From Hyaloraphidium curvatum SAG 235-1 (taxonomy: Eukaryota; Fungi; Monoblepharomycota), in assembly GCA_025558095.1 (NCBI GenBank), contig JAIVFI010000041.1:62001-126000 (forward strand): DNA of 64,000 nt, read 5' to 3'. The notes beneath the pieces are model-generated. The model saw only the letters and a program-made list of their open reading frames with translations. It was not told the origin of the DNA and searched no databases. Numbering within the stretch: position 1 is the stretch's first letter; every line of letters starts with the position of its first letter. The position numbers were made by a program, and so were the translations under genes. Below are positions 245 to 46,353 of the stretch, piece by piece.

Positions 245-1613
245 GGCAGGCTGCAGCGAATGGAATACGCCCGGGGCACTCAGGGGGCTGGACGCGTTGA
301 AGCTCGATCTGTTTACGGTTGTTGGGGTCGGCGTTGCGACGATTCGCCCGGATGTGCCTCATTGATCCAACTCCAGTGATACGCTACAGGCATCGCGCAC
401 GTCAATTGCGTTCGACAAAGAGCGCTCCCGTCTCTGCAAACGTTCGCGCCGGAGCACGCGCCGGATACCGGAACGAGCCCTCCCCGCAGTGTCCTACATC
501 AGCCAGCTGTCGGCATTTCCGCCGATGAGCGCTGCGAGTCTCCCCGCCCTTGCGACCGCGACATCAGAGCTTGGCGGGCTTCTCTTTTTAGATGGTTCTT
601 TTCAGTGTGTGACGCCTCCAAGGTCGAAACGTCCGCTCCCGTTCCCTCGCTGGCGTTCTCTCCGATGCGGCCGATCATGAGTGTGCCCCGCAACAGCATG
701 AGCCGTCGGCGTCGTGGTACCGGGTGCTTTGCCGCCGTGTGCGAAGGATGATGAGGCCGGCCGATCTTGCGATGCCGGCCGCGGTGACGTTCCGAACATT
801 TTGTAGCACGCCGGCGCGGGTTTGATCGTCCCTGGAGCTCCCAATCTGGGAGTTCCGGGGCGGAAGAAACCCAGGGCGCTTGCCGAAAGATACAACGGAA
901 ATCGCAAAGGGAAAGACGCACAGCCCCGCGACCTTAACCCTCTTCATTCCAGCATGGACCGAAGACCATGCCAGGATGACGCCTCAGGCCGCGGCATAGC
1001 ACGTTCCCCCCGTGTAGAGTGGTTCAGCATCTCATTGGCCGAGATCCGCAGCTCGTTGATGCGTCGTTGACAATCGTACGTCGAGACGGGCGTGGCGACG
1101 CCCCACTGTTTCCCCGTCCACGTGCGACAGTGCAGGAACCAACCGGCCCAGTCCACGCTCATCCACCGACGGCTCTCACCATCGGCGCATGTCTGCAGTG
1201 GAGCTGGGCGGGTCCGCTCCGCCCACGGCGCCGCGACGGGGCGTTGTTGCACCGCCAGCTCAGCGCGCGGGCTTCCCATGTTCCAAGACCAGCCCTGCGG
1301 CGTTCCCGACAAGGCGTTGGACGCTGCCCCGAACGACGGCAAAAGTGCCATCGGTGGGCGGGTCCGCCGCTGCGCGCTGTGGAACGGGAGGAGGCCAGCC
1401 CGTCGAAAGGCGCCCAGCCGGGCACGTTTTGAGAGGCGCGACGCCGTTGCCGTTTGCTCCGCGCCGGGTGGCGTTCGAGCGCTCGGGTGAGGTCGTGCTG
1501 GCTGCGACGCGCGGTCTGGGTGATGAGCTGTTCGTCGGGACCACTGATGAGCTGTGTTCGTCGGACCATACTGCTAGGGAACAAGGACAGCGGATCGAAC
1601 CCAGTCCATTGAC

Positions 1614-3110
1614 CTACGACACCGTCGGACACACCACCTCCATGGTGAACCCTATCCCCGCGGCGCGCAGGATCGTCCACAGGCCCAGCGCGAGCGTCGC
1701 CGAGGTGACCACCAGCGTCCGCAGCGTCCCGTACCCGATCACGAACCCCGCCAGCCGCATCTTGGATCCCTGGACCCCCTGGAACGCGGCGATCACGCGG
1801 TCGTGCGCGAGCAGGCCTTCCACCGCCGCCGCGCGCAGGCCGTCCCCGTCCGCGCCCCGCAAGGGCATCGCGGCCACGACCAGCTCGCCGATCTCGCGGC
1901 GGGCCTCGGCGTACAACTTCGACAGGTCGTCCAGCTGCCCGTTCATGACCGACATGTTGACCAGATCGACCACGATCTGGTTGGCGCTGAAGACGGCGCC
2001 TCCGAGGGCGTAGACGGGGACGCAGGAGCCCGAGGCGATGTTGATCACGGCGTTGACGATGGTGCCGAGGACCGCGGTGGTGATGAACCCCGCCGTGGCG
2101 CCCAAGACGCGGTACCGCGTGGGCCAGCTCCGGGTGATGACGTCGTGCAGGATCTGGTACGGTTCGGTGCCATTCAGGTCCGCCGGGGAGGCGTCCTTCG
2201 GGGTCCCGAGCAGCGCGGTCCGGTACCGAAGCAGGAAGTTCGAAAGGGCAAGCCGCATCCCGCGGTCAATGAGCCTCCGCGAGAGGTTTAGGCTCGCAAC
2301 ATTGCCGGCGTAGCGGAGGAAGTTGTTGACCGGGTAGAAGGTGACGACCGAGATGATTTGCACCACCGTCAGCAGGATGCCCCACCAGGTCCCGATAAAC
2401 TGCGCCCCAAAGGTGACGAAGGAGGTGTACCCGAACAGAAAAGTCATGGTAGCCCCCAGAACGCTGCGCCAGACCACTTCGAGGAGGTGGAGCCGGGCTG
2501 CAGCTTGGGGAGCGCCGCCCGCGCAATCCGGCCGCGCGCAAGGGCAGAGGGGGTCGTCTTCGATGTGGCCGACGAGATTCGCGCCAGTGGCCTCCTTCTC
2601 CGCGACCCGGGACGCCTGGAGCCACCGCGCGATGGCCGCCGAGTAGTGCCAGCTCATCTCCCGACCGGCGGAGACGGCCGACGCGGCGCTGGCTATGACG
2701 TTCCGGAACGAGGCCCCGAAGAGGACAATGGTCGTGAAGCCGAGGGCAAGTACAACTTCGGCGATGAAACCCCCGACCAGCTGGCGCGTGCCGAACCGCC
2801 CGTCGTTGAAAACCAGAATGGTGGAGAAAGAAACGGCGATCGAACTTCCGTGGAGCAGAAAGTGCCGGAACACGAGCCACGGCGCCAGAGGCACTGTAGC
2901 GGCCTGCAGCCGCAACAGGTTCCGAAGCAGCGGAAGCCCCGCCAGCTCGCGCATAAGCGCAGCTCGGGTGAGCGGCCGTTCATCGCGCAGACCGCCCGTC
3001 GGGTCGGCTGCAGGCGGCGCCCCTGACAGCTCCGTTCGGGGGGGGGTGTCGAAGGCGCGAGGGCAAGCCATTCCTCGCGCGAGCATCGGGTTGATAGACT
3101 GGGGAGACAA
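1614..3110 (-). CDS. Multi-pass (~7 TM) membrane protein, possibly 7TM ion channel (GR/DUF3537)-like
   Basis: 498-aa intronless ORF with seven hydrophobic segments; C-terminal RLAGFVIGYGTLRTLVVTSATLALGLWTIL; exact start uncertain. Confidence 0.65.
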   Translation of the reverse strand: MSPQSINPMLARGMACPRAFDTPPRTELSGAPPAADPTGGLRDERPLTRAALMRELAGLPLLRNLLRLQAATVPLAPWLVFRHFLLHGSSIAVSFSTILVFNDGRFGTRQLVGGFIAEVVLALGFTTIVLFGASFRNVIASAASAVSAGREMSWHYSAAIARWLQASRVAEKEATGANLVGHIEDDPLCPCARPDCAGGAPQAAARLHLLEVVWRSVLGATMTFLFGYTSFVTFGAQFIGTWWGILLTVVQIISVVTFYPVNNFLRYAGNVASLNLSRRLIDRGMRLALSNFLLRYRTALLGTPKDASPADLNGTEPYQILHDVITRSWPTRYRVLGATAGFITTAVLGTIVNAVINIASGSCVPVYALGGAVFSANQIVVDLVNMSVMNGQLDDLSKLYAEARREIGELVVAAMPLRGADGDGLRAAAVEGLLAHDRVIAAFQGVQGSKMRLAGFVIGYGTLRTLVVTSATLALGLWTILRAAGIGFTMEVVCPTVS

Positions 3111-3329
3111 AGGCTTGGGTTGACGCGCCGCAGCCCATGGCCCCGACCCCGCCTACGCACGGCGAGGAAAGGCTGGATCTTTCTGAGTCGTTGGACTTGC
3201 GTAGATGGATGGATGAGCAGTGAGTAAGCTCGGGATGATGCTTCCAAGGCGGCGCTAAGGACTCGGCTCCTCCGCTAGCTTGGGCCTGCGACGCGAGCCC
3301 GCGACGCCACCTTTGTTTATTTACGCCAG

Positions 3330-5763
3330 ATGGCGTCCCGGACCCTCCTCCACGCCGGGGCGGCGACGGGGCGGCTCCTGCCCCGCCATGCGCGGGATTT
3401 TGCCACGATGGGCGCGCTCTGCGGGCCGCGGACGCCGGCGACGATGGGGCCGAGAGGGACAGCCGACGCCGCCCGCCTTTTCCGGCGCGCGCCGCCCTCC
3501 CGGCGCGGATCCGCCCCTCTGCTGGAAGCCGCGCGATCCGACCGCGCGTCCGACGTGTTTACGCAGCTCTCCGCCGCGGCCGACCCGAACGCGCGGCGCA
3601 AACGGCGAACGGCCGCTGCACGCCGCCGCCGCCGCGGGCGCGCTGGCGTCTCTGCGGGCGCTGCTCGCCGACCCGCGGACGAATGCGCTGGAAAAGGACG
3701 CCGCCGGCCGCACGCCGCTGCACACCGCGTGTCTGCACGGCAGGGCGGAGGCCGCGGCGGCCCTGCTGGCCGACCGCCGCGCCAGAGCCGCCCTGTCGGT
3801 GGCCGACAGGGGCGGCCGCACGCCGCTGCTGGTGGCCTGCGCCGAGAACAGGCTCGAGGTCGTGGAGGCGCTGCTCGCCTCGGGGCTCGAGGTCGACTGG
3901 AACGCCCGCGACAGGGCCGGACGCGGCGCCCTCGAACTGGCCGGGGACACGATGAAGGTCTTCCTCCGCGGAGCCATGGCCGCGGGGCGCCGGGCCGCCG
4001 GGCAGCGACTGCCCGCCCCTCCGGCGCCGGAGGCTGTCGGCAACGCGCCGGAGGACGCCGATGCTGCAGTTCCGGAGAGCGCGGGAAAGCGGAGGAGGGA
4101 AACGAGTGCTGACGCATCCGACCGGCCGGTCCGGCAAACAGATTCGGCGGCACGCCGCCGCGATTCCAAGCCGTCATCGGTTGCCGGACCGCCGCGTGCG
4201 GCACCTCTTGCCCCGATCGACCTGCGGCGGGGCCATCATGAAGTGGGACACGTTTCGGGGGACATTGCGCCTTTGGAAATGCGGGCGTCCGTCGCCGCCG
4301 GGGCTGCGAGCCCGACGCCCGACCTGCTTGACTTACCGTTGGGCAGACCCTACCAGCTTCCTGCTTCCTTTTTCTGGCTGGCAGAGGACTGGGCGGCGAC
4401 CGGGAAGACCACAGAGGGGCCAGCGCAGGATGACTCCTCCGACTCTCCGGCACCCGAAGCCACATCGAAGCCGGCGGGCTCGCCGAACCCGCTGCCCCCT
4501 GGCGCGACGCCTGCGGACGTCCGTACCTTCCTGGCCTCGGACCCGCCCCAGATCGACGTGGACCGGGCGCTCCTCCACGCCGTCCTCCGCGACGACGCCG
4601 CCGTGGCCCTGGCCCTCCTGGCCTCGCCTCGGGCGAATCCTGGCCTGCGGATCGCCGACAGGACCACCCTGCTCATGGTCGCGGCCGCCTGCACCACCGA
4701 TCCGGCCGTCGTGCTCGCCTTGCTCGCGGACCGGCGGACGGATCCCGCCGCAAAGGACTACAGGGGCGGCACTGCGCTTCACCACGCCGCCGGCTCCTCG
4801 TTTCGTAGCAGGGAAGTGCTCCGCGCCCTTCTGCACGACCCCCGCTTGGACACGGACGCCGTCATGAAGGGCGACACCCCCTTCCTGCGGCTTCTCCGCG
4901 TCGGCCAGCTGGCCGACGCGCGGCTCTTCTTGGATCCCGCCGTCGCCGTGCGCACGGACCTCGGCCACCGCCATGCGATAACCGCACGCGGGCCCGGTGC
5001 GGTCCTCCGCTTTCGTCTGAACCACAAGCCCCGCAGCCCGACGGTCGTCCACGCGGTGGAGCTCTTGCGCGCCGACATCGTGGCCGCCGCTGCCAACACG
5101 CCGCACGCGCGCCTCGTCGAAGCCTGCATGGACGGCGACTCGGCCGCCGCCGCCTTCCTCCTGGACGCCGGCACCTCCCCCGACCGCGCCGCCACGGTGC
5201 GCGACCACCGGCTGGCCGTCACCCCCCTCGACGCCGCCATCGCCCGCGGCGACCGCGACCTCGCCGCCCTCCTCCTCGACGGCGGCGCGGACCCGAACCA
5301 CCCCTCGCGGGGCCGCACCCCGCTCGAGCACTGCGTGCGCGGAGGCCGCTTCGACATCTTCCTCGCCCTCCTCGCGCACCCCGCCGTGGATCCCAACAGG
5401 ATCGGCGCCGGCGCCGGCGACAGGATGCCTCTCGTGCACCGCATCGCCGCGCTGCGGGGCAAACCGTGGGACCCCCCGCAGCACGCGTGGCTGCGGGCCT
5501 TGCTGGCCCACCCCCGAACGGATCCGGAGCTGAGGAACGCGGCGGGGGAGACGGCGCTCCATGCGGCGTGCAGGACGGGGCACGGCGAGGCGGCGGAGAT
5601 GCTGCTGGCGGATGCGAGGGTGGATGCGGGGGCGAGGGACGCGGAGGGGAGGAGGGCGGGGGAGCTGTGGGCCTTGGGGGGTAAGAAGAAGACAAAGGAA
5701 CAGGCGGACGGGGAGGAAGGAGACACTGAGGTGGTGCGGCCACCGGCCGTTTCGATGACTTAG
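3330..5763 (+). CDS. Ankyrin-repeat protein with an apparent frameshift near 3593
   Basis: Repeated G-x-T-P/A-L-H-x-A motifs (GRTPLHTAC, GGTALHHAA, GETALHAAC); the first repeat (PLLEAARS...DPNAR) lies in the ATG-3330 frame and the rest in the 3280-5763 frame. Confidence 0.85.
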
Positions 5764-32195: not shown

Positions 32196-32414
32196 TAGAT
32201 AGAAATAGAATAGTATTGGTGACCCGGACCTGCCCCTGGCTTGGCCGCTGTTACACCATGGAGTTTGCTGCTAATTGCAAAGTTCATCGTCGTCGTGTGT
32301 CTTTTTCATTTTCCCAGTTTTCCTTTCCTTCATGGACTTTGAGATGAAGCTGGCAATGGAGTTGAGGGCCTTCTCCTTCTGCCGCCTCGCTTTGATTGTG
32401 GGCTCGAACTCCTT
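32196..32414 (-). mobile_element. 5'-truncated LINE copy (~220 bp) inside copia RT (mirror at ~44322-44540)
   Basis: Diverged copy of 33870-34098 including the stem-loop and TTCTA-type tail. Confidence 0.85.
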
Positions 32415-33209: not shown

Positions 33210-33300
33210 AACTTTGCAATTAGCAGCAAACTCATGGTGTAACAGCGGCCAAGCCAGGGGCAGGTCCGGGTCACCAATACTATTCTTCTTCTATTCTATT
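33210..33300 (+). mobile_element. Tail-only (~90 bp) LINE insertion, antisense to copia (mirror at ~40794-40883)
   Basis: ACTTTGCAATTAGCAGC...GGGTCACCAATACTATTCTTCTTCTATTCTATT matches the LINE 3' end. Confidence 0.85.
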
Positions 33301-34457
33301 CCCGGGGAGGCTGCTGTGCCCGAGAGGAATGACACACAGGACGATGACCACGATGACCATGGTGCTGTCCATTCTGCTCTTGCTGTTCTTGCTGCTCAAG
33401 CTGTGGAAGATTTTGCAGGTCTTGCTGCTGATAAAGATCTAGTGGCTCTTGTTCCTCCTCCTCCTGAGGCACTAGATCATCCGTTTGGATGACATCAAGT
33501 AGATTGAACGTTGAAAGAGGCGGCCTTGCCGTGCTGTCGACAGCTTCCTTGCGAGGAAGTGGGTGTAAGGAATGTTAGGAAAGGGTTCTGAGCGCTCATT
33601 TGGCACTATGGTTCGGACCGCTATGACTTTTCCTGAATCAATCAAACGAACCATGTGCATGCCCTTTTGTGTTTTGGAGCTCTCCCCAAGTAGATTGCTC
33701 GCGCAGCACATGGTGCCAAGGTAGTGAGTTCTCTGTCTCGCACTTGGGCCCAGCATTCCATTCCGAATGTATAGAAGTCTTCGACTTTTGTAATTTCTCC
33801 ACTCCACAAAGTCAAAGGAACGGCGTTCTTTCTCCATGATTTGGTGGTTGGCACACAGTTGAGGACGTGAATAGAATAGAATAGAACAGAATAGTATTGG
33901 TGACCCGGACCTGCCCCTGGCTTGGCCGCTGTTACACCATGAGTTTGCTGCTAATTGCAAAGTTCATCGTCGTCGTGTCTCTTTTTCTTTTTCCCAGTTT
34001 ACCTGTCCTTCATGGACTTTGAGATGAAGCTGGCAATGGAGTTGAGGGCCTTCTCCTTCTGCCGCCTCGCTTTGATCGTGGGCTCGAACGAACTCCTTGA
34101 TGCTAAGAGCCCAGAGCCAGGTCTCCATCCACTCGCGGCCTACTGCTTCCAATCTAGTCTGCAGCTTCTGGCGCCGCTCCGCATTTGCTGAACAGTGAAA
34201 CAGAAAGTGCTGTTCGTCTCCAATGTGCTCAGGGTCATGCTTGCACGTTCTCTGCTGCACCTCAAGTCCTTGGTGCCTGCCTGTCTCCACCTCCAGGTCG
34301 TGGGTAGAGCACAACAACTTTTGGACATTCCTCCGGTGCTTCTCCACCCGGATCAGGGATGGTCCGATGTGGCCAAAGGTCATGTCACACATCCTCCAAA
34401 AGTGCAGTTTGTCGTTGTCCTTGAGCCTCTGGGCATTGATCTCCCTGAACTTGCCCT

Positions 34458-36359
34458 TCACAAGATTCTCCACAGTCTCCTTGGGCCATGAGAAAGTGTC
34501 CTCTCCCACATCTCCCTCCCATCTTCGCCGCCATAGTATACAAGTAGTTCCCTCAGGAAGGCAGCCCAGTTCCAGGACCCCTTCAGTGCCTCGATCTTGA
34601 GCTCTTTGTAAAGTAGGTACAGCGCAGGATCCGCTGTTTTGATGCGCATGAGGAACTTGAGTGCCGACTCGTGGTCATGAGCTGCAAGGGGGTACTGGCC
34701 AGTGATCGCATACAGACAGGCCAGGGAGGTAGACTTGGGCAGATGAGTGACGGCACGAAGAGCCATGCATGTCACTTTGTCCCTGGTGCTTTCCCCGGCA
34801 AGGTACTCCTCCTTCGGCATCTCAACAATGAACGGGTTCCCATATTGGCCCACTGCCTTGACCTTTGTGTTGTAGAGCTTGAGCTGGAGGTCAGGACTCA
34901 TCCCAGGCTGCTCCCTGATGTCACGGAGCCAGAGCCCATAAGCAGCGTTCATCTTGGCCTCTCTGCCATGCACATGGTCCTTGCTCCGGCCGGTTGAGGT
35001 CAGCTGATACCCCAGAAGCTTGAAGCTGTCAACCCTCTTCAGCTCCTGGTCCGTGTACATGAGCTTTACACGGTGAGGTATCCTCCTGGCCATCCACTCT
35101 GTCTTGCTGACGTTGATCTCCAGCCCATTGGCACTGGCATATCCAGACAGAAGATCCAGCTGCATCTTGGCATCCTTCACCGTCTTCGAGATCAAAGTGG
35201 TGTCGTCTGCGAAGAACAGAGCTAGCAAGCTGACCATCCTCTCCTGATCCTCTTCCTCCTCAGACACCATGCCCAGATCCATCCCTTTTGCACCATTGGC
35301 CTCCATGAAAGCAGTGATGTCGTTGATGAACAAGATGAAGAACAGCGACGAGAGAGGGTCCCCCTGCTTCACTCCGGTCAGGAACTTGATGAAGTCTGAC
35401 TTGGTCCCGTCTTCATCCCGGAGCCGTCCCCACACGCGCCCGAACGCCATCTCGAACATGTCAACAACCTGTTTGGGTACACCCATCTCCTCCAGTTTCT
35501 GCCATAACCTGGGGCGCTCCACCGTGTCAAAAGCCTTTGTGAAATCTACAAAGACCATGATCAGCTTCTCCTTGCGTGCCTTGGCCAGGGAGAAGAGTGC
35601 CTCGGCAAGGAACACTGCATGAAGGGTCGATCTCCGTGCACAGAATCCAAACTGCGAGCCTTCCAGCAGCTTGTTGCACTCAGCCCAGGGAGCTAGCCGA
35701 GCGTTCCAGACCAGGGAGAAGACCTTCTCCAGTGTTCTCTCTATGCTGATGCCCCGGTAGCTGCCAGCCACGTTCTTGGGCCCCTTCTTGTGCAGCATCA
35801 CCAGCAGTGTCTGGCCCCAGTCTTGCATGTCAACCCCATTGAACACGTCATTGAGCAGATAGACAACAGCTCCATTGAGCACGTCGTTGAGCAGATCGAC
35901 AACAGCTTGCTTCAGCACAGTGGTCCCGTACTTGACAAATTTGAGCCTGATCCCATCCTCATCCGCTGCCCTGCCGTTAGGAGCCTTCTTCAGGACCTTC
36001 TTCACGAGCTCCTTGAGGGTGATGGGGCGCAGCAGGTTCCCAGGAGGCGTGATCGTCGCCTTGGGAAGCGGTGGGAATGTGAGCCTGGGGTCTTCCTCGA
36101 TCTTGGTCACGTACTCGGCACTGGCAACCATCTCCATGTGGCATACGAGCTCCGCAAAGGGCACGGGGTTGCCCTTCCGCCTCGCATAAGTCTTTCCAAG
36201 CAGTTGGTAAAATCCCTTATTAGGCTCTTGCCTGAAGAGTCGTTCCAGCAGCTCAGAGTTCTTGTGCTCCACGATATTCCGCATCTTCTTCTCCAGCTTC
36301 TTCCTCTCCTTCTCCAGCTCTCGTGCCTTCCCTTGGTATTCCTTCTTTGATTCTTCCAC
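34458..36359 (-). CDS. LINE reverse transcriptase domain
   Basis: KKGPKNVAGSYRGIS, QFGF, FVDFTKAFDTV, GVKQGDPLS, FFADD, LEINVSKT, FKLLG. Confidence 0.92.
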   Translation of the reverse strand: MEESKKEYQGKARELEKERKKLEKKMRNIVEHKNSELLERLFRQEPNKGFYQLLGKTYARRKGNPVPFAELVCHMEMVASAEYVTKIEEDPRLTFPPLPKATITPPGNLLRPITLKELVKKVLKKAPNGRAADEDGIRLKFVKYGTTVLKQAVVDLLNDVLNGAVVYLLNDVFNGVDMQDWGQTLLVMLHKKGPKNVAGSYRGISIERTLEKVFSLVWNARLAPWAECNKLLEGSQFGFCARRSTLHAVFLAEALFSLAKARKEKLIMVFVDFTKAFDTVERPRLWQKLEEMGVPKQVVDMFEMAFGRVWGRLRDEDGTKSDFIKFLTGVKQGDPLSSLFFILFINDITAFMEANGAKGMDLGMVSEEEEDQERMVSLLALFFADDTTLISKTVKDAKMQLDLLSGYASANGLEINVSKTEWMARRIPHRVKLMYTDQELKRVDSFKLLGYQLTSTGRSKDHVHGREAKMNAAYGLWLRDIREQPGMSPDLQLKLYNTKVKAVGQYGNPFIVEMPKEEYLAGESTRDKVTCMALRAVTHLPKSTSLACLYAITGQYPLAAHDHESALKFLMRIKTADPALYLLYKELKIEALKGSWNWAAFLRELLVYYGGEDGREMWERTLSHGPRRLWRIL

Positions 36360-36721
36360 TCCTCCTTCTCCATGAGGGATCGCAGCTCAAGAAGGCGTGA
36401 CAGCTTGCGGTCGATCTCGGTCCTCTCCGCCCTTCGAATCCGCAAAGCCGTTCAGGAACTTATCAGCCTCGCTCATGCACGCTGACCTTGTCGTACTTCC
36501 TTTTTGCCACCTTGTTCACCGCCGCCATGATCTGTATCAGCTGATTGCAATTGTCTGAGCCAGCCTCCATCTGCTCGTACTCCTGCATGGACTCTTTCAC
36601 CCACGCCTTGTCCCAGAGATTTCGCATGATCGCGAGGACGTGGAAGTTGCAGGGCACGTGTTTGCCACGCAATTTGTTCTCCTTCACAGTCGCTCGCTTG
36701 ACGTCGGCCTGGGGGGTATGG

Positions 36722-38493
36722 GTATGGTATTGGTGACCCGGACCTGCCCCTGGCTTGGCCGCTATTACACCACCATTGGTTTGTTTAGCTGTGTCGACGA
36801 CCTATCTGCCTCCTCCTTCCCTTGAATCCACAGTATGCTCCAGTCCCGGTGTTGTTTGCTGGCAGGAAAACCTTCCCACGAAGGTGAAAAACCTTCCAGA
36901 AAGAATGAGCAGTTTGGTTTCGGTTTGGGTTTTGGGACCTTCCCATCCAGCGGGTACAATGTCAGGCATGCAGCTTCATCTAGGTCCTGAAAAGTTCAGT
37001 GTTGGTTCTGGTCAAAAGGTGCTGGATTCGCCGTGTAGGCGAGCAAAGAGCCGTAGGGCTCCTGCCTCCATTCCCCGTGTGTCTTGGAGTCGCCGTGTAG
37101 GCGAGCAAAGAGCCGTAGGGCTCCTGCCTCCATTCCCCGTGTGTCTTGGAGTCGCCGTGTAGGCGAGCAAAGAGCCGTAGGGCTCCTGCCTCCATTCCCC
37201 GTGTGTCTTGGAGTCGCCGTGTAGGCGAGCAAAGAGCCGTAGGACTCCTGCCTCCATCCCCGTGTGTTTTGGAGTCGCCGTGTAGGCGAGCAAAGAGCCG
37301 TAGGGCTCCTGCCTCCATTCCCCGTGTGTCTTGGAGTCGCCGTGTAGGCGAGCAAAGAGCCGTAGGGCTCCTGCCTCCATTCCCCGTGTGTCTTGGAGTC
37401 GCCGTGTAGGCGAGCAAAGAGCCGTAGGGCTCCTGCCTCCATTCCCTGTGTGTCTTGGAGTCGCCGTGTAGGCGAGCAAAGAGCCGTAGGACTCCTGCCT
37501 CCATCCCCGTGTGTTTTGGAGTCGCCGTGTAGGCGAGCAAAGAGCCGTAGGGCTCCTGCCTCCATTCCCCGTGTGTCTTGGAGTCGCCGTGTAGGCGAGC
37601 AAAGAGCCGTAGGGCTCCTGCCTCCATTCCCCGTGTGTCTTGGAGTCGCCGTGTAGGCGAGCAAAGAGCCGTAGGACTCCTGCCTCCATCCCCGTGTGTT
37701 TTGGAGTCGCCGTGTAGGCGAGCAAAGAGCCGTAGGACTCCTGCCTCCATCCCCGTGCGCTTTGGAGTCGCCGTGCAGGCGAGCAAAGAAGCCGTAGGGC
37801 TCCTGCCTCCATCCCTGTGTTGGCCGCTTACGTGTCCAGAGACCGGAATCCACGGATATGTCGTTGTTTGCGCCGCGGCCCCTCCTTGAAGAGGCGCACC
37901 GGCGGGCAGTCAGCAGCGTTTAGAGCCAATGCGCCGCGCAGCTGCCTGCTCCATTCGCGCCCTTTCGCACCAGAAAGCGCACGCGGTTGGTCGCTTGTTG
38001 TTTGGCGGGGTGCGTCCACGCGAGCGACGCGTCCCATGTTTGACGTGCGCCGCCGTTAAGTGTCATGTTTCTGCGCCCAGAGCCAGAGAGCCACGCGGTC
38101 CTACGGCACGTTTTTCAAGCGGCACACGTGAGGCACACGCTGTCGTAGGCCCGCGGTCGCGTCTTCAGCACGCGACGCGTTGTTTGCCCACTAACAGACG
38201 CGGCGCCCCCCGGAGAAGAGCCTAGCCGCCCTGCAGGGCCAGCGCAAGCCTCTTGAGGCCAATGGGCTCCTCAAGCGCTTTTGCGGCGTCGCCTGCCACG
38301 CTTGGGGCACCGGTTTTGCAGCCGGTCCCGTCTGCGCGTCCCCGGGTGCCCAACCCGCACACCGCGCCGGCGCCGCGCTAGAGGGCAGGAGCCCTAAAGC
38401 ACGACGACCCCAGACACTGCTGCTCCGCTGCTCGCGGCCCAAAGAGCGCGCGCGAGCAGCGGGGTGGGCAGGGGTGTTTGGAATTTGACTACA
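36722..38493 (-). mobile_element. ~1.77 kb non-coding insert in the LINE, ending in the LINE 3' stem-loop (candidate non-autonomous SINE-like element)
   Basis: Separates APE (..SDHMALSKMMEVS) from the downstream LINE frame (..PQADVKRATVKENK); ends at 36727-36775 with GGTG...GGGTCACCAATAC. Confidence 0.6.
37024..37822. repeat. Tandem array of 13 units of 61-62 bp with an AAAB higher-order pattern
   Basis: Unit GGAGTCGCCGTGTAGGCGAGCAAAGAGCCGTAGGGCTCCTGCCTCCATTCCCCGTGTGTCTT; starts at 37024, 37086, 37148, 37210, 37271, 37333, 37395, 37457, 37518, 37580, 37642, 37703, 37764. Confidence 0.97.
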
Positions 38494-39250
38494 CGAGACC
38501 TCCATCATCTTGCTCAGTGCCATATGATCTGAGGTGACCACCCAATCCTCCTTCACAAAGGCGAGCTCGGTGACCATCCTGTAGCGGCTCTGCGGCGCAA
38601 TTGCGTAGTCCAAAGTGCTGTCATGCTCGCCGTCTTTCCCTGCACAGGTTGTTGCCCCTGGTTCGAGGCGGCTGTTCAGGATCACAAGCTCCTCCCCCTG
38701 ACACAACGCAAGCAGCTGTTTTCCCCTCCGATCTGTGCGCTGCTCCGACCGAATTACACGCTTTCCGAAGCTTGTGCCACGCACGTTGCTGTTTGCATCA
38801 CTTATCCCCACGTGGCCGTTCAGGTCTCCGATCACGATCGGCATGTCAGATCCGGTTACGATCCCCGCGAACCTCGTCCACATCTTGTCCTGGCTGATGA
38901 GGATATCCTGCGTTGGCGTCGGTGGTATGTACGCCCCCAGCACGTTCATTCCGCCGACTTGGATCTGCACAATGTTCAGGATCGGGTCCAGATCCGTCCG
39001 CACCGTGTGCGGTAGCTCCTTTCGCACAAAGACTGTCAGTCCTCCTCCACCATGCTCCAAGCAGCTCTTCTCATACACCTCAAACGTCTCCAGCACTGCC
39101 GCAACCTTGCTCTGGATAGTGTTGTTGCTCAGATGCTCCTCCCAGGTACGTTTCTCTCCTTCTCCCATCCACCTTGCCTCGGCAAAAACGACGACATCGT
39201 ACTTTACAATTTGCAGCAAAAGTTCCGGTATAAGTAGGCTTTTCTCGAGC
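38490..39250 (-). CDS. LINE AP-like endonuclease domain
   Basis: DVVVFAE, GGGGLTVFVRK, GAYIPP, IGDLNGH, STLDYAI, SDH. Confidence 0.88.
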
Positions 39251-41177
39251 TTGCGGTGGGATAAAAGGGAGCCACCCTGGAACCTGTTTTGGGGCGTGAC
39301 GCGACACAGCTTGGTGCCATGGACGGAAAGGCTCAGACAAGCGGGCGCCAAGAAAGATCCCGCGCCGCGCGGGTGCATGCGGGTGCAGGGCTTTGGTACG
39401 GTGTGTCACTGTTCCTGAACGACGTGCCTTTGTGCGAGGCATGGGCTTGCGGAGGCGATGCTGCAGGTTAATTGGCAAGAGGGTGCTTGGAGAGGTCTGC
39501 CGAGATCGAGGCACTGAAGGGGTCCTGGAACTGGGCTGCCTTCCTGAGGGAACTACTTGTATACTATGGCGGCGAAGATGGGAGGGAGATGTGGGAGAAG
39601 GACACTTTCTCATGGCCCAAGGAGACTGTGGAGAATCTTGTGAAGGGCAAGTTCAGGGAGATCAATGCCCAGAGGCTCAAGGACAACGACAAACTGCACT
39701 TTTGGAGGATGTGTGACATGACCTTTGGCCACATCGGACCATCCCTGATCCGGGTGGAGAAGCACCGGAGGAATGTCCAAAAGTTGTTGTGCTCTACCCA
39801 CGACCTGGAGGTGGAGACAGGCAGGCACCAAGGACTTGAGGTGCAGCAGAGAACGTGCAAGCATGACCCTGAGCACATTGGAGACGAACAGCACTTTCTG
39901 TTTCACTGTTCAGCAAATGCGGAGCGGCGCCAGAAGCTGCAGACTAGATTGGAAGCAGTAGGCCGCGAGTGGATGGAGACCTGGCTCTGGGCTCTTAGCA
40001 TCAAGGAGTTCGTTCGAGCCCACGATCAAAGCGAGGCGGCAGAAGGAGAAGGCCCTCAACTCCATTGCCAGCTTCATCTCAAAGTCCATGAAGGACAGGT
40101 AAACTGGGAAAAAGAAAAAGAGACACGACGACGATGAACTTTGCAATTAGCAGCAAACTCATGGTGTAACAGCGGCCAAGCCAGGGGCAGGTCCGGGTCA
40201 CCAATACTATTCTGTTCTATTCTATTCTATTCACGTCCTCAACTGTGTGCCAACCACCAAATCATGGAGAAAGAACGCCGTTCCTTTGACTTTGTGGAGT
40301 GGAGAAATTACAAAAGTCGAAGACTTCTATACATTCGGAATGGAATGCTGGGCCCAAGTGCGAGACAGAGAACTCACTACCTTGGCACCATGTGCTGCGC
40401 GAGCAATCTACTTGGGGAGAGCTCCAAAACACAAAAGGGCATGCACATGGTTCGTTTGATTGATTCAGGAAAAGTCATAGCGGTCCGAACCATAGTGCCA
40501 AATGAGCGGACCCTTTCCTAACATTCCTTACACCCACTTCCTCGCAAGGAAGCTGTCGACAGCACGGCAAGGCCGCCTCTTTCAACGTTCAATCTACTTG
40601 ATGTCATCCAAACGGATGATCTAGTGCCTCAGGAGGAGGAACAAGAGCCACTAGATCTTCATCAGCAGCAAGACCTGCAAAATCTTCCACAGCTTGAGCA
40701 GCAAGAACAGCAAGAGCAGAATGGACAGCACCATGGTCATCGTGGTCATCGTCCTGTGTGTCATTCCTCTCGGGCACAGCAGCCTCCCCGGGAATAGAAT
40801 AGAAGAAGAATAGTATTGGTGACCCGGACCTGCCCCTGGCTTGGCCGCTGTTACACCATGAGTTTGCTGCTAATTGCAAAGTTAGGAATGGTGGAAAGCC
40901 CCACAACTGCAAGCTACAATCAGGGCAGGAATCCATGGACTAGTGCACACGGACTTTACAGTTTATTTGGGAGCCAAGGAGGTTTTGGAATGCCAATGCA
41001 CGTGATTGATGGGCTTCGAATCCCAAGCAAGATCAATTGCGAGGCAAAGCTTTTGCCAGAATGGGAAAAGTGGAATTAGGCTTTTAAAATGGAGGATGGT
41101 GCTTTCAATGACAAAGAAGTCTGGGAAGAGGTTGAAAGACCCCGTGGCAAGGAGGACTGAATTCTCAAATCCCACTA

Positions 41178-43811: not shown

Positions 43812-46353
43812 TACGTGTTCGACCTCAAACTCAACCAGACCTCACCAAACGGTACCGGTTCAAGGCACGTCACGTGGTTGATGGCAACACAACCGCCAGG
43901 CTCCTGGGACCTACGGGGAGACTTTTGCAGCCATGCCAACCCATGCAGCCTTCAGATCACAGTGTACCATAGCTGCACACATGGACTGGCCCCTTTACCA
44001 TTTGGACATCAAGAACGCGTTCTTGAATTCCCATGCAGAAGAGGAGGACCTCTACGTTGAGATACACGAGACTTACCAATAATAGCAAAGGACGGACTTG
44101 TCTCTCAAGGACCCCGTTCTCAAACTGAAGCGCGGGGGGTCTATGGCCTCAAACAGGCAGCCAACCTGTATCAGCGTGAGCTGAAGCGCAACATGAAGGA
44201 GGACGGCTTTCACAACTGCAAAACGGACCCCAACATGTACGCACGCATCAGCAAGGGCGAGTCAGGAGAGATTGCAATCCTTCTTGTGACCATGGACGGA
44301 TGTGTGTAGCACGGGACACCCAAGGAGTTCGAGCCCACAATCAAAGCGAGGCGGCAGAAGGAGAAGGCCCTCAACTCCATTGCCAGCTTCATCTCAAAGT
44401 CCATGAAGGAAAGGAAAACTGGGAAAATGAAAAAGACACACGACGACGATGAACTTTGCAATTAGCAGCAAACTCCATGGTGTAACAGCGGCCAAGCCAG
44501 GGGCAGGTCCGGGTCACCAATACTATTCTATTTCTATCTACCCACCAGAATTCGTCAGAGAGTGCATTGCATTGATTGAGGACCGGATATTTATCACGCT
44601 TTCTTGGTGAAGTGCAGCTCTACGACGGTGTGGAAGTCATCCGTGGCAGACCCAACAAAAGAATCATCTTGAGGCAAACAGTCTTTGCAGAGAGGATTCT
44701 GGAGAAGTACATTACCAACACCACGCAAGCAGTGCAGTTTGCTGCCGGCGATCTCACCTAGAACCAGAAGTTTGCCACTCCCATTTCTTTGAAGGATGCT
44801 CCGTCACCATTGCTCCCTTCCGAGGGATTTAGGAAGCCAGACATTGCAGATCCGGAGGTCATGGCATCGTTCAACTATGCTACTCTGGATGCATTGGCTT
44901 CTTGCTTTTCCTAGCTCTTTGCACCAGGCCTGACATGGCATATGCTGTCATCTACCTCAGCAGGTACCTGCAGAACTATGGAAAGGAGCACATTGCGGCT
45001 CTCAAGAGAATCCTGCGCTACATACTTGAGTCAGACCCGGGCATTTGGACTCGTGATTGATGGCAACAAACCATTGGTGCTGGAAGCTTTTGCAGATGCG
45101 GGTTTTGCAGGTGATCTGGACACTGCCAGATCCATGCCACCACAGACGTTGTCATCATGGCATGTGGAGCTCCGCTCTCCTTCAAGTCAAAACTCCAAAG
45201 CCTTGTGGCTCAATCCACTACCAAAGCAGAGTACATTGCCCTGGCACAAGCCACGAGAGATGTGATGTACTTGCGCACCCCTTTTGAAGACTGGGGTTTC
45301 CGATGCCAGGCCCCACCATCATCCACGAAGACAATGCTTCGGCACAGGACTTGGTTTACAATCCTGCCTGTTCACCATGAGCACACCAAACACATTGCAA
45401 TTCGATACCATTTGACTCGACAACAACAGGAACTTCGAACAATCTTGGTTCAGGACATTGAATCCGGAAAACAACTTGCGGACATCATGACAAAGGCTCA
45501 GCCGAAAGAGCAAACAGATCTGGGAGTTCTGGATACCACCATGTTCTTGCCGCAGGGGGAGTATGCACGGGGATGAACGGACTGCACTATAGAGTGTTGT
45601 GCCTGTGCAAAACCGCGGCGCTCTGGACAAAGACAACAGCAGCAGTGGATTTGGTCAGGTTTGCCACGCTGCTTGGTGCTCAAACCTCTAAAGAGGTTGG
45701 GGGGAGGAGTTGGTCCCGCTTCGGGGGGAGTGTTGTGACGAGGTTGTTAGGCTGGCAGCAACTTAGAGAAGCGGCCCCAACTCCAATCACAACGTGACGG
45801 AATTCCCCACACACAGGGGTCACGCATCCTTCCGTCCACTCCGGCTGGAGGCCGGACCAGTTGTCCATTACAACACTGTACAGTGGCCATGCCAGGAGCT
45901 GAAGAGGGTCGACAGCTTCAAGCTTCTGGGGTACCAGCTCACATCAACCGGACTAAACCCGGACGGAGCAAGGATCACGTGCATGGCATATGCGTGCATG
46001 GCAGGGAGGCAAAGATGAACGCTGCCTACGGACTCTGGCTCAGCAACATCAGGGAGCAGCCTGGGATGAGTCCTGACCTCTAGCTCAAGGCAGCCAATAA
46101 GCACTGACATATGCAGACAGATAAAATTCAGCTGGACCTTGATATCCTTCACCAACTTTGCGATCAAGTTGTGCTGCATCTGCAAAGGACAGAGTCAGCA
46201 AGCAGGCTGACAATCCTCCCCTGCTGCTCTACCTGCTCATCACCGTGCCCAGCCGTGGGCCATGATCGGGACGTGATGGCCACAAAGGCCTGGGTCCTGG
46301 CAGGCAATGATTTCCAGTGCTTTGCAGTGTAATGGCGCATGCAAAACAGATCA

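Follow-up and report, generated by a model that had tools for sequence, protein, structure and literature searches.

What is the block of non-coding DNA that interrupts a LINE in the fungus Hyaloraphidium curvatum, and why does it end like the LINE itself? The window, i.e., the whole stretch of 64,000 nucleotides that was analyzed, had previously been read from its letters alone. This sequence-only reading described a 1.77 kb non-coding insert that splits the LINE between its endonuclease and RT. The description held, because the uninterrupted LINE copies L043, L047, L035, and L036 were continuous across the break point of the window's LINE in our alignment, and no ORF of the insert was supported by Pfam. 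Boundaries were set by alignment to uninterrupted LINE copies and by comparison with other copies of the insert. They define a discrete non-coding element of 1788 nt on the minus strand (36711–38498), termed X, whose insertion separated the endonuclease and RT parts of an old LINE copy. The 5' boundary lies at 38498 (TCTCGTGTAGTC...), 5 nt further out than first read, with TCTCG common to the C1 copy of X. The 3' boundary lies at 36711 (...CATACCCATACCCCCC). The window copy is of the X-alpha type, and its parts are listed in Table 1. From the evidence presented below, X is probably a LINE-dependent, non-autonomous, non-coding retroelement that is SINE-like in action but is not a Pol III SINE.

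Table 1. Parts of element X and of the LINE copy that it interrupts, in window positions
Feature	Position	Strand	Remarks
Whole element X (X-alpha)	36711..38498	-	Non-coding, probably a non-autonomous retroelement; boundaries from alignments of LINE and X copies
5' leader of X (TCTCGTGTAGTCAAATTCCAAACACCCC...)	38460..38498	-	5' ends of five copies, unrelated flanks
CpG-island head of X	37821..38459	-	GC 0.67, CpG o/e 1.13; putative internal promoter plus leader
62-nt tandem array, 12.9 units	37023..37820	-	VNTR: 1.9–6.9 units in other copies, absent from X-beta
Unique 3' part of X, ~250 nt	36773..37022	-	GC 0.51, CpG o/e 0.41; four T4–T5 runs, sense strand
49-nt tail common to X and LINE	36724..36772	-	47/49 identical; X-specific T variant; presumed RT recognition site
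X-specific terminal repeats, (CATAC/C)n and C-run	36711..36723	-	Length differs among copies
Upstream half of the interrupted old LINE (endonuclease, Exo_endo_phos_2)	38499..39500	-	Cut at 39500 by inverted duplication
Downstream half of the same LINE (RVT_1 RT, C-terminal part, 3'UTR, tail 33891–33939, (TATTC)n)	33861..36710	-	

The head of X (~680 nt) contains a 12-bp perfect hairpin at 38425–38462 and an 18-nt box, TCTAGCGCGGCGCCGGCG, at 38365–38382. This 5' hairpin is conserved, with two compensatory pairs. Across the genome, the head was found only in copies of X, apart from a 160-nt relative within a 559-bp repeat that is present in two copies. The 18-nt box showed the same distribution, being present only in X and in the 559-bp repeat, and was rejected as a general promoter motif on account of this confinement. 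The unique 3' part was detected in X copies only. Full-length copies begin at the start of the leader or 8–9 nt further in.

The ORFs of the insert were searched against Pfam, and no match reached its cut-off. Open frames within the array arise as artefacts of the repeat, their frame being set by the number of units. Protein coding in the head or array was therefore rejected. Similarly, Rfam returned no match at E≤1 on either strand of the insert, and ARAGORN found no tRNA, in agreement with the earlier statement that no tRNA-type A/B boxes are visible at the 5' end. With these results, a tRNA, 5S, 7SL, or other known RNA was dismissed as the source of the head. X departs from a Pol III SINE in further respects. 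Such SINEs span about 80–600 nt, a size that the full-length copies of X exceed (1214–1788 nt). They are also free of internal terminators, whereas X carries its four sense-strand T4–T5 runs upstream of the tail, two of which are kept in X-beta. These runs, together with the absence of a tRNA, 5S, or 7SL head, argue against Pol III, and when the length of the element is added, they point to transcription of X by Pol II.

Screening of the genome (31.9 Mb, 55 contigs) revealed ~12–14 copies of X, spread over 11 contigs. Wherever the 3' end is intact, it stops at one common tail position, while the 5' starts vary: they lie at about -5/1 (C41 and C1), 4 (C12 and C29), 5 (C13), 84 (C39), 178 (C25), 192 (the duplicated pair of C10), 571 (the inverted pair of C3), and 1656 (the second copy on C29). 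Unrelated flanks adjoin each 5' end, the flanks of some copies having been read within 1.5 kb only. The heads of the C41, C12, and C29 copies show 0–1 differences over 699 nt; their flanks, 5' ends, and array lengths differ. Because such near-identical heads stand at sites with unrelated flanks, the family, which is small, appears to be young and recently active. Older copies show 2–3% divergence in the head, and CpG transitions account for 30 of the 64 distinct substitutions among the copies. The array comprises from 1.9 to 12.9 units across copies and varies even among the three near-identical ones. Dispersed copies with a common 3' end, variable 5' ends, and a tail that is always linked to the body fit the long, non-tRNA SINE-like element that the sequence-only reading had offered as one of its options. 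The same copies dispose of the possibility, raised at that time, that the insert is single-copy.

The insertion sites bear on how these copies arose. Empty-site paralogues were available for three copies, namely for the window copy (in the LINE), for the C12 copy (in repeat R, which is another repeat of the LINE-rich islands), and for the C3 copy (in the LINE 3'UTR). The junctions are precise, and the overlaps at the known empty sites amount to 0–9 nt, partly as ambiguous microhomology with the 5' end of X. Clean target-site duplications, which had been expected, were not found: none at the X copies was significant, as alignments of the flanks scored no better than shuffles. The LINE insertions in the window lack clear target-site duplications as well.

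The absence of clear target-site duplications would also suit copying of X as DNA, without an RNA intermediate, through segmental duplication, gene conversion, or recombination between repeat islands. The islands do duplicate DNA. The two C10 copies of X lie 4 kb apart and the C3 copies form an inverted pair, both pairs having arisen by DNA duplication, and the window itself contains a large inverted duplication. However, homology between X copies ends exactly at the ends of X, beside unrelated flanks, and the empty sites are precise. Moreover, a single 3' terminus, at a LINE-type tail with variable end repeats behind it, is common to all copies, and their 5' truncations are nested. We therefore regard a purely DNA-level spread of the family as extremely unlikely, and an RNA-based spread with the help of the LINE as the better account.

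The tail is the part that connects X to the LINE. Within the window, the LINE homology of X is confined to the 49 nt of 36724–36772, which are 47/49 identical to LINE tails. Past this tail, X has CATAC/C repeats where the LINE has (TATTC)n, and both vary in length among copies. A LINE-like 3' end with end repeats of its own, as the sequence-only reading had noted, is thus present on the insert. Two variants of the tail were distinguished in the genome. The T variant (GGTGTAATAGCGG...) occurs exactly 10 times, each time attached to an X body. For the C variant, 97 occurrences were counted, with LINE 3'UTR upstream in 36 of the 36 contexts that were readable in the fetched loci. Since the diagnostic T is always on X and the end repeats are X-specific, the tail is an inherited part of X rather than an adjoining piece of LINE. 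An independent truncated LINE insertion, named earlier as the alternative source of the tail, was ruled out on the same two grounds.

The tail had also been described as a nested hairpin. Such a hairpin can form, with a predicted energy of -15 kcal/mol for the LINE, X-alpha, and X-beta alike, but its stability is no greater than that of shuffled sequence (z -0.5 to -0.9) and lends it no thermodynamic support. The hairpin shows no covariation either, the three variant bases being located at unpaired or peripheral positions.

A second subfamily made it possible to compare the parts of X. X-beta consists of one copy (C31, locus L017). Compared with the window copy, its identity amounts to 77.6% over the head and 81.8% over the 3' part, the 62-nt array is missing, and the element ends in (CATTC)4. 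In the 49-nt tail, X-alpha and X-beta agree at 48 of 49 positions, for which the binomial P is about 2e-4 at 20% divergence. The tail is the most conserved part of X and, to judge from this comparison, is under selective constraint, as expected if the reverse transcriptase must recognize it. The array, in turn, looks like a late VNTR expansion and neither a defining nor an essential cargo, since X-beta has none; the proposal that a structured array is what the element carries was accordingly dropped.

If X depends on a LINE, a competent partner should be at hand. Four full-length LINE copies are 99.1–99.8% identical over 2.2–2.7 kb. The C42 copy has an open ORF1 of about 454 aa and an ORF2 of 1109 open codons that include the EN and RT domains; among the full-length copies, ORF2 is open for 1078–1109 codons. 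The same genome thus holds a partner LINE that looks coding-competent. A search of its proteins against solved structures gave only generic matches to R2 and L1 RT, which do not place its clade.

In the full-length LINEs, the ORF1 ATG is preceded by only about 25 nt, for which two leaders (v1 and v2) exist, so there is no long 5'UTR that could be the head or array of X. The earlier suggestion that the array is the LINE's own 5'UTR fails for this reason. Likewise, X as a LINE 5'UTR with monomers, of the mouse L1 type, was rejected because the LINE leaders are short and the head is specific to X. A longer ancestral leader that would unite the two leader variants is absent from the genome. Neither the head, the array, nor the 3' part of X (a body of about 1.2 kb) has LINE homology in the window or in the LINE loci. 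Hidden homology was sought between the 3' part and the last 760 nt of the LINE (3'UTR and end of ORF2), where the alignment score equaled the shuffle mean. The other option of the sequence-only reading, an internally deleted LINE derivative, was given up with these results, as was a SIDE or RIME-ingi type of origin by internal deletion.

A resemblance at the 5' end nevertheless deserves attention. Aligned with LINE leader v2 (CCAAACACATCCACCCC), the first 40–50 nt of X-alpha and X-beta give p of about 0.01–0.015 against shuffles, i.e., they fit this leader better than about 99% of shuffles. X-beta and leader v2 have an exact 11-mer in common, and X-alpha also has the AGTCAAA of leader v1. X could on these grounds be a LINE shell, in which both termini were kept and the coding interior was replaced by foreign non-coding sequence, as in an origin of the SIDE or RIME/ingi type. 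The resemblance extends over about 20 nt, however, and is weak, short, and C/A-rich, with p of only about 0.01, while the two X comparisons are not independent and only four full-length LINE 5' ends were available for them. The word CAAACAC also opens the unrelated 559-bp repeat, which has no LINE tail, and the body of X, as described above, is without LINE homology. We take the 5' similarity as a lead and not as a result, and consider the shell origin distinctly unlikely.

What was found for X corresponds to a LINE-tail-dependent retroelement. Its 3' end is LINE-homologous, the rest is unrelated and non-coding, the tail is inherited, a common 3' end is combined with variable 5' truncation, and a coding-competent partner LINE is apparently present. 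Most likely, therefore, X borrows the copying machinery of the resident LINE through its last ~50 bases, although this mechanism is deduced from sequence. The low copy number, the C10 and C3 pairs that were duplicated as DNA, the lack of significant target-site duplications, and the unremarkable stability of the tail hairpin speak against it. In the proposed course of events, an RNA of about 1.2–1.8 kb would be transcribed from the CpG-island head of X, probably by Pol II, and its 3' end would consist of the 49-nt LINE-type tail and, beyond it, the pentanucleotide repeats. The LINE ORF2 protein would recognize this tail in trans and copy the RNA by target-primed reverse transcription. Slippage of the reverse transcriptase on the end repeats would change their length, and its frequent early stops would leave 5' truncations. 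New copies would land where the LINE lands, i.e., in the LINE-rich island of each contig. The 62-nt array would be carried along as a fast-changing, non-essential VNTR inside X.

This course of events can be compared with known systems. In classical SINE/LINE pairs, the two partners have the tail of a "stringent" LINE in common (PMC3747384). The closest described case to X appears to be EhSINE1/EhLINE1 of Entamoeba histolytica (PMC2996970), which Ohshima's table of SINE/LINE pairs classes as "SINE-like, promoter unknown" (PMC3747384). Like X, EhSINE1 is non-coding and shares nothing but its 3' end with the LINE, over about 70 bp as compared to 49 nt in X; the rest has no LINE similarity, there is no clear Pol III head, and internal tandem repeats vary in number. 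X is 2–3 times longer (1.2–1.8 kb compared to 0.5–0.6 kb), its repeat units are 62 nt instead of 26–27 nt, and it adds a CpG-island head and a pentanucleotide end. Furthermore, X has about a dozen copies compared to 393 of EhSINE1, and these are without clear target-site duplications and confined to the LINE islands of a fungus.

Stringent SINE/LINE pairs include UnaSINE1/UnaL2, the CR1- and RTE-tailed tRNA SINEs, and, among fungi, Mg-SINE/MgL and SINE2-1_BG/Tad1-24_BG, the fungal pairs in that compilation being tRNA-headed (PMC3747384). They resemble X in the LINE-derived 3' tail, which is the presumed RT recognition site, in end repeats that vary by slippage, and in 5' truncation. In contrast to these SINEs, X has no tRNA, 5S, or 7SL head, is far longer, and contains internal T-runs. 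SINEX of Chlamydomonas also has no known promoter and ends in RandI/L1 tails with short non-poly(A) end repeats (PMC3747384). By description, it is similar to X in lacking a recognized Pol III head and in having a LINE tail and short end repeats; compared on the same descriptive basis, it differs from X in host kingdom and LINE, and X in addition has the VNTR and the CpG-island head.

The SVA elements of hominids are composite, non-coding, and kilobase-sized, contain an internal VNTR, and are mobilized in trans by a LINE, probably after Pol II transcription. SVA has a poly(A) tail, relies on relaxed L1 recognition, and is built of known repeats (Alu-like and SINE-R). X is comparable to SVA in its kilobase size, composite build, and VNTR, but is proposed to use a specific LINE tail and not poly(A). 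The SIDEs, RIME/ingi, and NARTc/L1Tc are non-autonomous partners that have LINE termini and are LINE-homologous throughout (PMC6740152, PMC2996970). X differs from the SIDE and RIME types in that its LINE homology is limited to 49 nt of the 3' end, with perhaps another ~20 nt at the 5' end.

A search for literature on transposons of H. curvatum found no papers, and the X family appears to be undescribed, whereas parasites of this kind have been described in amoebae, algae, and animals. Its size, CpG-island head, VNTR, and confinement to LINE islands are unusual. X would provide a clean case of a LINE parasite, young and small in copy number, in which the 49-nt tail alone is borrowed and two subfamilies 20% apart mark this tail as the part under selection. 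As a kilobase-sized, LINE-tailed element without a Pol III head, it would extend the "SINE-like, promoter unknown" group of Entamoeba and Chlamydomonas to an early-diverging fungus, and it may offer a natural substrate for testing recognition by the LINE reverse transcriptase. The principle of borrowing a LINE tail has been known since the 1990s, and to the specialist X is useful rather than surprising.

Finally, we considered the transcription and genomic location of X. Among contigs of public runs, whose depths refer to contigs and not to reads, those with X had a depth of 970–4500 in one run that we guess to be RNA, compared to about 20–200 on most of the flanking LINE, although single LINE bins reached about 670 and 2500. 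Two DNA runs from this organism gave similar depths, 11–20 for X contigs and 8–13 for LINE contigs. The difference suggests that X RNA may be abundant. Regarding location, all 11 X loci lie ≤4.3 kb from a LINE tail, and the 97 LINE tails occur in clusters, for the most part a single one per contig. That X of the window lies inside its own LINE follows from the accumulation of both elements in these LINE-rich islands and does not require a special site.

Such a strict confinement to one island per contig, together with the low copy number, the possibly very high RNA depth, and the CpG-island head with its conserved and compensated 5' hairpin, could also be expected of a host non-coding RNA gene of the LINE islands, e.g., a centromere-associated lncRNA that contains a repeat array, with the dispersed copies as by-product retrocopies. 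Yet no "master" locus is prominent among the copies, which decay by CpG transitions as other repeats do, and X-beta is without the array. The tail, furthermore, is the most constrained part across subfamilies that are 20% apart, as expected if retrotransposition is what is selected. A host gene at the origin of the family is very unlikely in our opinion, and a LINE-dependent retroelement remains the preferred reading of X.

A wider proposal includes the LINE as well. X and the LINE may be a pair restricted to chromosome islands, perhaps the centromeres, of this early-diverging fungus. X would in this case be an abundant Pol II transcript from its own CpG island, with both LINE termini (the 5' leader of about 20 nt and the 49-nt tail) on either side of a fast-changing 62-nt array, and its RNA would be at once a parasite of the LINE and a major repeat RNA of the island or centromere. 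We find this combination unlikely; if true, it would represent the first report from fungi of a LINE parasite that is of the stringent type and independent of Pol III. The X family can also be used as a marker for the LINE-rich island on each contig.

The head of X, the non-coding LINE-tailed retroelement, is 77% identical to the first ~160 nt of a 559-bp repeat. This repeat occurs in two copies that are 96% identical, have unrelated flanks, carry no LINE tail and are both located outside the LINE islands. The invariant box TCTAGCGCGGCGCCGGCG was found genome-wide only in X and the 559-bp repeat. The X head may derive from the 559-bp repeat or be related to it. The leader of X contains a perfect 12-bp hairpin (window 38425-38462, minus strand), and when X was aligned with X-beta, its diverged subfamily copy, and the 559-bp repeat, two pairs of the consensus stem were preserved although both partners had changed. 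In a freshwater metagenome run, one 267-nt contig matches the X head (window 37773-38039) with 3 differences, so H. curvatum or a close relative is present in that habitat.

The 62-nt unit of the tandem array lacks a stop codon in all three sense frames. The array is thus open in all three (window 37012-37853, minus strand), with frames of 266-285 codons. Given the GC content, a stop-free unit of this length was estimated to arise by chance in about one of six cases, and no family match was found for any of the three open frames.

The host LINE, the old copy split by X, is cut at position 39500, and this cut was made by an inverted duplication. The inverted pair (window 39503-40240, plus strand, versus 33861-34598, minus strand) is 99.9% identical and comprises the LINE 3' end with its downstream flank. 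LINE tail fragments form two further mirror pairs in the window (see table).

Three copies of X have their 3' side cut off, and all three have a sequence starting with GACCCCAACATG in the flank, directly at the break in the pair on contig C10 and, in the C25 copy, ~22 nt past it. One LINE tail is likewise interrupted at its end, by a sequence beginning with GACCCCTGG. A different mobile element with insertions in the islands may have its terminus in these sequences. The C12 copy of X is bordered by a further repeat of the islands, at least 540 nt long; because this repeat is unbroken at other loci, these provide the empty site for this copy. The same repeat lies immediately upstream of the 5' end of a full-length LINE copy on C21. 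At 4 kb from an X copy on C12, six LINE tails on a single strand follow one another at a regular spacing of ~2028 bp (G000:C12:481432-491592, own genome); this series is a tandem array of the LINE 3' segment. The four full-length LINE copies have two different ~25-nt 5' leaders, each in two copies, ahead of an identical ORF1 start, a hint that the 5' end has been switched or that transcription can start at alternative sites.

Locations of repeats, truncated copies and LINE leaders (L, fetched loci; C, contigs of the own genome, G000)
Feature	Location	Further location
3'-cut X copies and cut LINE tail	L008:2195, L009:2134, L005:1306	L063 (C24 LINE tail)
Island repeat, at least 540 nt	L004 flanks; L061:1981-2512	L014, L019, L029, L030, L041, L056
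Mirror pair, LINE tail fragments	window 32199-32409	window 44327-44537
Mirror pair, LINE tail fragments	window 33210-33301	window 40792-40883
559-bp repeat, copy 1	L020:1503-2059	G000:C33:499600
559-bp repeat, copy 2	L021:1497-2055	G000:C12:193369
LINE 5' leader sites	L065:1458-1500	G000:C21:691485, C42:326285, C24:488705, C35:158913
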